Shown in pieces: positions 597-24,022 of a stretch of 64,000 nucleotides of DNA; positions within the stretch are counted from its first letter, which is position 1; each line of letters starts with the position of its first letter. Location: positions 498,542,001 to 498,606,000 of the forward strand of contig NC_067399.1 in assembly GCF_016432865.1 (NCBI RefSeq), read 5' to 3'. Source of the stretch: Antechinus flavipes. Taxonomy: Eukaryota. The notes beneath the pieces were generated by a model that was not told the origin of the DNA, searched no databases, and worked only from the letters and a program-made list of their open reading frames with translations. The position numbers and the translations under genes were made by a program.

Positions 597-3500
597 ATGG
601 CTCCTAAGAAAAAACCAGAGGCTAAGAAGAAAAAGAAGAAGATAGATATCCAGACAGCTACTAAAGCCATCGAGGAAGTCCTAACAGAGACTCGAGAGTT
701 CTACCACAGGCAAATCCAGGAGCTGGAGAATCAACTTGAAAGGTCAGCAATTCAGGAGGCCCAGACAAGTCAGGCAGGGTTCTGCACTTTGTTGGGGCTA
801 ATTGTGGCAATAGATGCTGGGAGGGGACTTGCCAGGTCCTCTGTCTTGGCTCTGATGGGAAAGGCTCTGGATATGGAGCCTTGAGGCCTGGGTGTTAATC
901 CTAGCTGTACCTTGAATCAGATCTGTGACCTCAAAAAAATCTCTGAGCTACTCACCCACCCTAAGCTTCCCCATCTGTAAAAGTGAAGGGTTCGGAATAA
1001 ATGGCACTTATGTGCCCTTTCAGCTCTAACAGTCTGAAGAACTGCTCTGAGCACCAAGAAACTGGAGTCCAGGGGTGGATGGTCACTGTACTTGGCTCTT
1101 GGGAGAGCACTGGGCCATTGTGGGAAATTGATTTTGGATTTATTTAGCCCTTTACTACTACTCTGCCCCTCTCTCTCCTCTTCCTAGGGTCAGTGAGTAA
1201 TCTCAATTTTCTGAAAAGCTCATTCATATAGAAGAAAGGGGGACTTGGTGGGTTAGTCCTCCAATGAGGGGTTTGAATTGTACAAAGGATCGGAAGGGCA
1301 GTCCACAAGAATGGATTGTAATTGAGGGCATCTCAGGCATCAGTCACAGGCCAGGGGAGAGTTTTTGGAAAGTGTGGTACAGTTTTGCATCACAGCAGAT
1401 GGACAACTGCTCTATCTTTTACATGCGCATAGATCTCTGACTTTTTCCAAATTAGTTTGACCTTGGATTTGAAGAACTCCATTTTTCTCATAGTTCTATA
1501 AGGCTGATAATATTAAAGTCACCTGTTGATCTCTATTATACTTATAGCATCTTTCTGCTTCTTTGGACCTGCAATTTTCTTCTTGTATTTTTCTCCCAAG
1601 AAGTAGAAAGACAGTGTCAATGGCCCTACTTCCTGAACATTTGCTTATGGTCTCCTTCCTCAGGAAAGAGCCTTATCTTGAAGCCTTATCCCCTTAAGCA
1701 TCTTGTTCCAGCTCTTCCAACCATATAGTAGGAAAAAACTGTGTCCCAACCTTTGCCTGTCTCTTACTCTAGGTACAGAAAGAAGTGGGATGAGTTGTCC
1801 CAGCAGGAGAAAGCTTTCCAGGAGGAGTTCGACCAGCTGGCTCACAACAAAAAGGAGGTTGTTTCTTTCCTGAAACGAACTCTTAATCAACGTGTGGATG
1901 AGATTGCTGAACTTAATTCTCAGCTTCAGGGGCTGCAGATCTCCAAAGAGATGGAGAAGGATGCCTTTGAGGCCCAGCTGGCCCAGGTACGCCATGAATT
2001 CCAGGAGACCAAAGACCAGCTCACCATGGAGAATATCACGTTAGGTAAGGGGAAGGTCCAAATCAGCCAGGCCATTATAACATCTTCATTGAGTGATTCC
2101 AAAGCATTCAACCAGTGACCTAGGCTATATCATGGATGAGATAGGAGGAAAAGGCAGATCTATGCCCTCAAGAGAGATTTCTTATCTAGGTAAGGACTTA
2201 AGAAATACATTGTAAACCACAAAACATTAAAGGCTAAACTCTTATTCAAAGAAGTAGGACTACAAAATAATGAATATGATCATTTAATAGGTATAGCAGA
2301 ACTTAGACATTTCAAGGGGCATTACCCTGTTAAAGTAGTTCCCTCTGAGAAGCTGTGAGTTTATTCCAGAAAAGATACTGATGCATAAATCATTTCTGGA
2401 ATCCTCTTTAAGGATTGCCTTCAGAGCCATTTAATGAATAAAATTTTTAATAGTGTTGAGCCAACTCTTGTTTGTTGTCTCAAAACATGATCTAGTCCAG
2501 TTACCACTTTTTTCATCAACCATGATTATAAATTAATTATTGCATTAAATAATAAAGTATTAAATACATTATAAATTATGAATGTCAAAAGATGATGATT
2601 TGCCACCAGTGAACTGGTAAGAATCCTACGATGTCCAAAGGTCATCATAGCATGGTAGCATAGTAAACACTATGGAATTTAATTTGGAGCCAAAGGATGT
2701 GGGTTCATATAAAAGTTCTACTTACCCTGTATGACCTTGGACAAATGAACTTTTTTAAAATTCTTGTTGCCAAGAATATGAGTGGCAACTTTCTTTTCTG
2801 AGTCTTCAGCAGGTGTGCTTGCAACACCCACAGAAACAGTTAGCTACCAGATCACATATACAGAGGGATGGCTTCCCAGGAGAATAGCTGTGAGAATTGG
2901 ATTGAAGATCATTCAAATAACTATAGGGTCTCCCAAGGGAACCATTTTGGGGGACTCATCTAATACACAAAGTCAATCAGCCAAACCTTGCCTAAGTGTT
3001 GTAGATTTCTGAAGAGGGAAGTCAGGGTGGACTGGTCAAGAAAGGAGATGATATGATTTGAGCTATCTTGAAAGATGTCTAAGTAAATGGAAAAAATAAA
3101 GGAGAGGGGGCTTATCAAGGGGGAGGTTTTGATTGGGCAAAATCCAGAAAAGTGCAGAGAATATTAGGCACAGAGAAGACTTCATGAAGCACAGGGTGTG
3201 AATTCGGAAGCTGTTACAAACACAAATGGATCAGTGATGCTGAACCAGATCACTGAAAGACTGGGAAGTAGTGGAAGCAGAGTTCTGCCTGAGGAGCATA
3301 TGGCCAGGGGCAAATCATTCCACACAGTCCAGGTCACCTTAAGGCCAGTTGAAGACTTTTGAGGGTCCTGAGGCCACTTGCTCACAAAATCTTTTCTGGG
3401 CAGGGGCTAAGTTGGCTGCACTAGAGGAATTCCAATTCCAGAAAAGTGATCTCTTGTCCAAGTTTTCCCTTTTGGAAGAGCAGCTGAAGAAGCAGCAAGA

Positions 3501-24022: not shown

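Follow-up and report, generated by a model that had tools for sequence, protein, structure and literature searches.

CFAP157 is required for male fertility in the mouse, where the sperm flagellum and midpiece need it for their morphogenesis, and the workings of its parts are poorly understood. According to Weidemann et al. 2016, as summarised in PMC5487853, the mouse gene is a FOXJ1 target whose protein interacts with CEP350; when it is lost, the sperm midpiece is disturbed and so is mitochondrial positioning. The CFAP157 gene (C9orf117) of eutherians and monotremes is single copy, follows a nine-exon plan, has PTRH1 as a neighbour on the opposite strand and encodes a protein in which two C-terminal motifs occur together. 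Here we analyze a stretch of 64,000 nucleotides (nt) from the marsupial Antechinus flavipes (NCBI RefSeq assembly GCF_016432865.1, contig NC_067399.1, positions 498,542,001 to 498,606,000 of the forward strand), referred to below as the window. It holds two complete nine-exon CFAP157 genes, arranged head to tail and both on the plus strand, which we call c1 (upstream) and c2 (downstream). With a probability of roughly 0.85, the locus represents an ancient tandem duplication in which the entire CFAP157 unit was copied, promoter and introns as well as the nine exons, and which became fixed before the living orders of marsupials separated.

The closest relatives of the pair are the marsupial genes Sarcophilus P0158, Sminthopsis P0244 and Dromiciops P0152/P0200, which are direct orthologues of c1 and c2 in the same gene order. 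They show no difference of substance from the Antechinus genes; the RefSeq models of c2 take a 151-nt exon 8. The gene pair is real and is catalogued in RefSeq, mostly under the name “CFAP157-like”. It is thus not a new gene, and since both members are already catalogued, their novelty is low. As a catalogue item the pair is ordinary, lineage-specific duplicates of testis genes being common. No paper on marsupial CFAP157 or “CFAP157-like” was found in the literature searched, and the value that remains lies in the evolutionary reading of the pair, namely its symmetric divergence, its ancestral shared promoter and its split motifs.

Comparison with the single-copy gene reveals a shared architecture. 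Exons 2-6 of polar bear CFAP157 measure 272/154/268/131/151 nt, as in c1 and c2, and platypus exons 2-5 agree as well, while the annotated platypus isoform differs from exon 6 on. The nine-exon plan, the PTRH1 neighbour and a conserved promoter block are likewise those of the marsupial pair. The differences lie in copy number and at the C-terminus: each marsupial copy is without one of the two motifs that the single-copy protein unites, and an acidic tail has been added in marsupial c2.

The gene models were rebuilt by a search that took the exon lengths proposed in the initial annotation and accepted open frames flanked by AG on the acceptor side and GT on the donor side. One unique chain per region came out of this search for exons 1-6 and 8; exons 7 and 9 were placed from phase, polypyrimidine tracts and homology. 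The resulting models are:

597-9207, plus strand: c1, the upstream paralog, found by exon search; 1569 nt, 522 amino acids (aa)
597-742, 1773-2044, 3404-3557, 4040-4307, 5962-6092, 7113-7263, 8042-8229, 8348-8516 and 9118-9207, plus strand: exons 1 to 9 of c1
15270-24022, plus strand: c2, the downstream paralog adjoining PTRH1, of the RefSeq type with 546-561 aa; 1656 nt, 551 aa (545 aa with the alternative exon-8 donor)
15270-15415, 16331-16602, 19788-19941, 20330-20597, 21015-21145, 21587-21737, 22942-23123, 23544-23712 (alternative end 23694) and 23840-24022, plus strand: exons 1 to 9 of c2

The initial annotation had described two intact nine-exon genes about 14.7 kilobases (kb) apart, with identical intron phases, canonical splice sites and no premature stop, and this description holds in full. 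Both genes were recovered with start codons 14,673 bases apart, their intron phases are identical, all introns are GT-AG, and internal stops and frameshifts number zero. The c2 start codon lies in a strong Kozak context (GCCGCCATGG), and the exon lengths of c1 are exactly those in the RefSeq models of Sarcophilus and Dromiciops. The further claim of identical exon lengths stands for exons 1-6 (146/272/154/268/131/151 nt in both copies), whereas the equality of exon 8 (169 nt) hangs on the c2 model that is chosen. The 169-nt form ends at a donor after position 23712 (TGAA/GTGCCA). The RefSeq models for c2 in Sminthopsis and in Dromiciops place the donor 18 nt upstream, giving a 151-nt exon, and the corresponding donor is present in the window after position 23694 (CAAG/GTATTC). 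The downstream position reads GC in Dromiciops, the upstream position lacks a GT in c1, and the long form is used in the c2 protein models of Trichosurus and Gracilinanus. Because both forms of c2 stay in frame, yielding 551 or 545 aa, equal exon-8 length is a model-dependent statement.

The two proteins are 43.8% identical (BLASTP). Per exon, amino-acid identity reaches 72% in exon 2, whereas for exons 4 and 6-9 it is ~23-36%. When the window is compared with itself, nucleotide similarity (66-76%) is confined to exons, apart from a colinear run through promoter, exon 1 and ~540 bp of intron 1. No third CFAP157 copy or fragment was found in the 64-kb window, which is eukaryotic, intron-rich DNA with zero runs of N. 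Within c1, intron 5 contains a low-complexity simple-sequence tract (6514-6831) that includes a direct repeat (6547-6676 versus 6675-6798, 78%). Both genes belong to the CFAP157 family: an exon-2 profile matched 218 of 1.84 billion representative proteins, and the named top matches are all CFAP157 (bilby, koala, platypus, reptiles and a frog). Similarly, c1 and c2 align with eutherian CFAP157 over ~490-530 residues at 47-50% identity (BLASTP); for eutherian and monotreme CFAP157 taken together, the full-length identity is 46-50%. A Pfam scan of single exons gave no CFAP157 family match and only sub-threshold coiled-coil noise (SKA2, XRCC4_CC), and no solved structure matched the c1 or c2 protein by sequence.

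The distribution of orthologues was taken from a full-length search with the bilby protein, in which 120 proteins were listed. Among these, c1-type proteins (518-524 aa, “CFAP157-like”) come from 10 marsupial species covering five of the five orders sampled: Macrotis, Dromiciops, Trichosurus, Notamacropus, Petaurus, Vombatus, Phascolarctos, Sarcophilus, Monodelphis and Gracilinanus. The c2 type (516-561 aa, plus one 655-aa UniRef model) comes from seven species covering four of the five orders: Dromiciops, Trichosurus, Notamacropus, Sminthopsis, Petaurus, Monodelphis and Gracilinanus. No c2 type from the bilby's own order is among the 120. The c1 protein is 94.6% identical to Sarcophilus (Tasmanian devil) P0158 and the c2 protein 93.8% identical to Sminthopsis (dunnart) P0244; the non-coding DNA of the window is ~92% and ~87% identical to the respective species, which places its source among dasyurids, closer to the devil than to the dunnart. 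These counts bear out the second marsupial copy that the initial annotation had proposed. Of the broad annotation across amniotes that it had named as evidence against its reading, a part exists: both paralogs are annotated in RefSeq across marsupials and not across amniotes.

A maximum-likelihood (ML) tree of 43 proteins (LG+C20+F+G4, frog root) places the marsupial proteins in a c1 clade (11 rows) and a c2 clade (8 rows), each with 100/100 support. American and Australasian species fall inside both clades, which shows long-term retention of both copies. Outside marsupials, polar bear and platypus have one CFAP157 each, adjoining PTRH1, and a tblastn comparison covering 10 kb upstream of either gene detected no remnant of another copy, in agreement with the single-copy state by PTRH1 that the initial annotation had given for human and mouse. 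Judged from the tree and these outgroups, the duplication postdates the monotreme split and predates the marsupial crown.

Placing the event more closely relies on the tree and on nonsynonymous distances (dN). Synonymous sites are saturated between c1 and c2 in every exon, with a synonymous divergence (dS) of ~0.9 or more throughout (exon 2: 0.89), and are saturated in the comparisons of each paralog with eutherians as well (YN00 method); dating by dS was therefore dropped. In the best tree the c1 and c2 clades are sisters, joined by a branch of just 0.031 with 93/73 support, and the stems measure 0.45 (c1), 0.54 (c2) and 0.30 (eutherian). The three lineages are about equidistant in dN (c1-c2 0.46, c1-bear 0.41, c2-bear 0.41). 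Such a short joining branch and such even distances also fit a duplication that predates the marsupial-eutherian split, after which eutherians lost one copy and marsupials kept the therian state, and approximately unbiased (AU) tests reject neither c1 with eutherians (p 0.263) nor c2 with eutherians (p 0.273), the log-likelihood difference being less than 1. This history nevertheless departs from the best tree, requires an extra loss event and has no second-copy remnant to show in the 10 kb that precede bear CFAP157; the single platypus copy keeps even this event younger than the monotreme split. We consider it unlikely. The marsupial-specific origin put forward in the initial annotation is accordingly favoured as the most parsimonious account and the one found in the best tree, at a support of 93/73 and with alternatives that the AU tests do not reject. 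On these data, the duplication most likely took place on the early marsupial stem, close to the eutherian split.

As in marsupials, a second annotated CFAP157-like gene lies on the same contig in the aardvark (Orycteropus afer, P0211/P0267). The two aardvark genes are sisters with 100/100 support and short branches (0.06 and 0.085), and by its place in the tree this duplication is recent, lineage-specific and separate from the marsupial event. A “CFAP157-like” protein of Rhynchocyon petersi (P0233) groups with the CFAP157 of Elephantulus and looks like a matter of naming, not a second gene.

The promoters of the two copies carry a shared conserved block. The relevant stretches are:

490-596, plus strand: proximal promoter and 5' leader of c1, with the conserved block CCTGTTACTATGTATAG ... 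GCTTCCTTAGCAACAGCTTG ... CTTTTAAAGGGGCAGCAG
15125-15269, plus strand: the c2 counterpart (proximal promoter and 5' leader), in which the block recurs
800-1280, plus strand: stretch of c1 intron 1 colinear, by alignment, with c2 intron 1 (~15480-15918)

The ~75 bp directly upstream of each ATG are far more conserved between c1 and c2 than is the coding sequence. A 20-mer within the block, GCTTCCTTAGCAACAGCTTG, is identical at 545-564 (c1) and 15202-15221 (c2) and occurs nowhere else in the window, with 0 matches expected by chance. In an alignment of three or four marsupials, the block (CCTGTTGCTATGTA ... GCTTCCTTAGCAAC ... CTTTTAAAGGGGC) is nearly invariant in both paralogs of dasyurids and of Dromiciops, and it also precedes the single CFAP157 of bear and of platypus. 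Because it is found in both marsupial copies and at the single genes of bear and platypus, the block is the ancestral core promoter of mammalian CFAP157, which each copy inherited. Within it lie the hexamers GTTGCT and AGCAAC, which resemble the two halves of an RFX X-box. The near identity of the two core promoters argues against a partition of expression at the core-promoter level.

The similarity continues into intron 1. Self-BLAST aligns 514-1280 with 15157-15918 at 66.5% identity, and the colinear intron-1 similarity of 65-80% includes a core resembling a mammalian-wide interspersed repeat (MIR; CCCCATCTGTAAAA). Its place in the colinear stretch suggests that this repeat predates the duplication; no other copy in the window matches it. 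Since promoter, exon 1 and intron 1 are colinear between c1 and c2, the duplicated unit carried all three.

Selection was assessed on orthologue coding sequences that were spliced from their loci by exact match and that all translate to the deposited proteins. Pairwise ratios of nonsynonymous to synonymous divergence (dN/dS) for c1 against Sarcophilus and Dromiciops are 0.22-0.23 by the NG86 method and 0.33-0.37 by YN00 or ML; for c2 against Sminthopsis and Dromiciops they are 0.29-0.34 and 0.52-0.56, respectively. All NG86 bootstrap 95% intervals lie between 0.14 and 0.47, and no replicate exceeds 0.57. Introns diverge by 8% from devil and by 12-13% from dunnart, and dN to the nearest dasyurid (0.024-0.034) amounts to between one quarter and one third of what the introns show. 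By these measures both copies are under purifying selection, with c2 somewhat less constrained, in line with the earlier proposal that selection has kept the second copy open. Two other explanations were tried and rejected. An assembly or haplotype artefact, dismissed at the outset on account of the divergence, is ruled out by the 43% protein identity, the saturated dS and the conservation of the genes in many assemblies. Gene conversion as the cause of the exon-2 similarity is ruled out too: exon-2 dS is 0.89, and exon 2 of the marsupial copies resembles that of bear and platypus (77-81% aa) as c1 and c2 resemble one another (72%). The high exon-2 similarity therefore reflects constraint.

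To compare what each copy has kept, we defined ancestral positions as alignment columns with a conservation of 80% or more across 18 eutherians and the same residue in platypus (n=233). Both clades keep 146 of them, 37 are kept in c1 only, 35 in c2 only and 15 in neither. The losses thus amount to 50 in c1 and 52 in c2, and on this count the copies have diverged symmetrically, neither of them being “the” orthologue. In exon 8 the retained positions fall into two runs, seven c1-only followed by five c2-only, unmixed, and these runs correspond to two motifs identified from the alignment and the column counts:

~8411-8440, plus strand: 11-residue motif of exon 8 retained in c1 and lost in c2
~23634-23694, plus strand: 17-residue motif of exon 8 retained in c2 and lost in c1

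The first ancestral motif, G-D-L-G-L-V-P-R within an 11-residue stretch that begins with Y, occurs in eutherians, platypus and frog; 11 of 11 c1 proteins have it intact, and in 8 of 8 c2 proteins it is replaced. The second, I-P-x-N-P-x-D-x-x-L-L-S-x-T-T-R, is likewise ancestral, with conservation reaching from platypus to eutherians; c2 keeps it intact, whereas in c1 it is replaced, with a three-residue deletion. In addition, the c2 clade has a specific and conserved acidic C-terminal tail (K-R-Q-L...E-E-E...F-L-G-Q), which derives from a longer exon 9.

This tail raises the possibility of neofunctionalisation, in which c2 acquired a new role while c1 carries on or shares the ancestral function. 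The slightly longer c2 stem (0.54 versus 0.45), its higher dN/dS and the new upstream exon-8 donor point the same way as the tail. The ancestral losses, however, are symmetric, neither copy is closer to the eutherian gene, c1 itself is without the I-P-x-N-P...L-S-x-T-T-R motif, and the core promoter is common to both copies. We regard a new role for c2 as a possible but doubtful account of the pair.

Several observations weigh against our reading of the locus as an old, selectively maintained pair with divided motifs. The AU tests described above fail to reject a duplication before the therian split. At the level of the protein, the 15 joint losses compare with ~11 expected under independence; complementarity is thus absent protein-wide, and the complementarity in exon 8 is local and was picked post hoc (chance 2/792, p ~0.0025). 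At the promoter, the strict X-box pattern GTNRCCNNRGYAAC has no match in either copy even with one mismatch. The c2 dN/dS of 0.5-0.56 by YN00 and ML amounts to fairly relaxed constraint. Finally, no AATAAA or ATTAAA occurs within 2.3 kb (9208-11500) after the c1 stop; because of this, the 3' end of c1 must use a variant poly(A) signal or lie further downstream. The missing canonical hexamer after c1, together with the weakness of the c2 exon-8 donors, would suit a copy that is an unrecognised pseudogene or a non-functional annotated open reading frame. Yet full-length open frames with GT-AG introns are kept in ten species for c1 and in most of the seven found for c2, species that span the whole marsupial radiation, dN/dS is well below 1 for both genes in every bootstrap replicate, and the promoter block is conserved beyond the coding sequence. 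Decay of either copy is therefore very improbable, and an ancient, retained tandem duplication continues to be the reading that we prefer.

The gene order around the pair is that expected of CFAP157, that is, by PTRH1 and TTC16 and downstream of STXBP1. The neighbouring gene is:

24262-25980, minus strand: coding exons of PTRH1 (peptidyl-tRNA hydrolase; Pfam PF01195, E 7.5e-09 and 1.4e-13)

PTRH1 is convergent with c2 and is the same CFAP157 neighbour in Sminthopsis, Trichosurus, Dromiciops, bear and platypus. The order c1, c2, PTRH1 (opposite strand), TTC16 is found in Trichosurus, Sminthopsis and Dromiciops, and colinearity between the window and the Sminthopsis locus extends through TTC16. 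In Monodelphis the order is STXBP1, then c1, then c2; in Sarcophilus a gene of 543 aa lies 6.8 kb downstream of c1, and in Notamacropus another gene lies 4.9 kb downstream of c1 (synteny in Monodelphis, Trichosurus and Notamacropus was read from gene tables). Upstream, the neighbourhood differs between monotremes and marsupials, since platypus has a glycosyltransferase-25 family gene before CFAP157 where the opossum has STXBP1. At the 3' side of c2, no canonical hexamer occurs on the plus strand within 380 bp after the stop, and the sole poly(A) hexamer near the PTRH1 3' end is a minus-strand AATAAA at 23989-23994, inside the last coding exon of c2. Because PTRH1's only nearby AATAAA falls within that exon, the convergent c2 and PTRH1 probably overlap at their 3' ends. 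The 3' region of PTRH1 also contains a direct repeat of ~100 bp (24144-24248 versus 24529-24627, 81% identity). Further on, an inverted repeat of ~440 bp (34631-35067 / 35450-35890) with 88.8% identity and arms ~380 bp apart falls in the TTC16 region, to judge from the colinear Sminthopsis locus; a transposon and a palindromic insertion are its possible origins.

As to how the pair might work, the X-box-like half-sites in the shared block and the status of the mouse gene as a FOXJ1 target suggest that both genes would be transcribed by the same ciliary program. By homology, promoter and selection, both products would be coiled-coil basal-body or flagellar proteins in spermatids and ciliated cells, like mouse CFAP157. 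The pair may have been retained through subfunctionalisation at the protein level, with the ancestral C-terminal partner-binding motifs divided between the copies, and c2 has possibly gained something new through its acidic tail. The conserved coiled coil of exon 2 could allow a c1/c2 heterodimer. Tentatively, and at odds we would ourselves call low, the marsupial pair may represent a natural separation of function, in which two putative docking motifs are split between co-expressed and jointly needed paralogs, possibly as a heterodimer, for assembly of the flagellum and midpiece.

Two old, selected copies with different C-terminal motifs and, it seems, the same promoter would offer a handle for mapping motifs to partners such as CEP350, tubulin and others. 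The pair also allows one to ask whether the distinctive shape of marsupial sperm was accompanied by duplication of a gene for sperm assembly.

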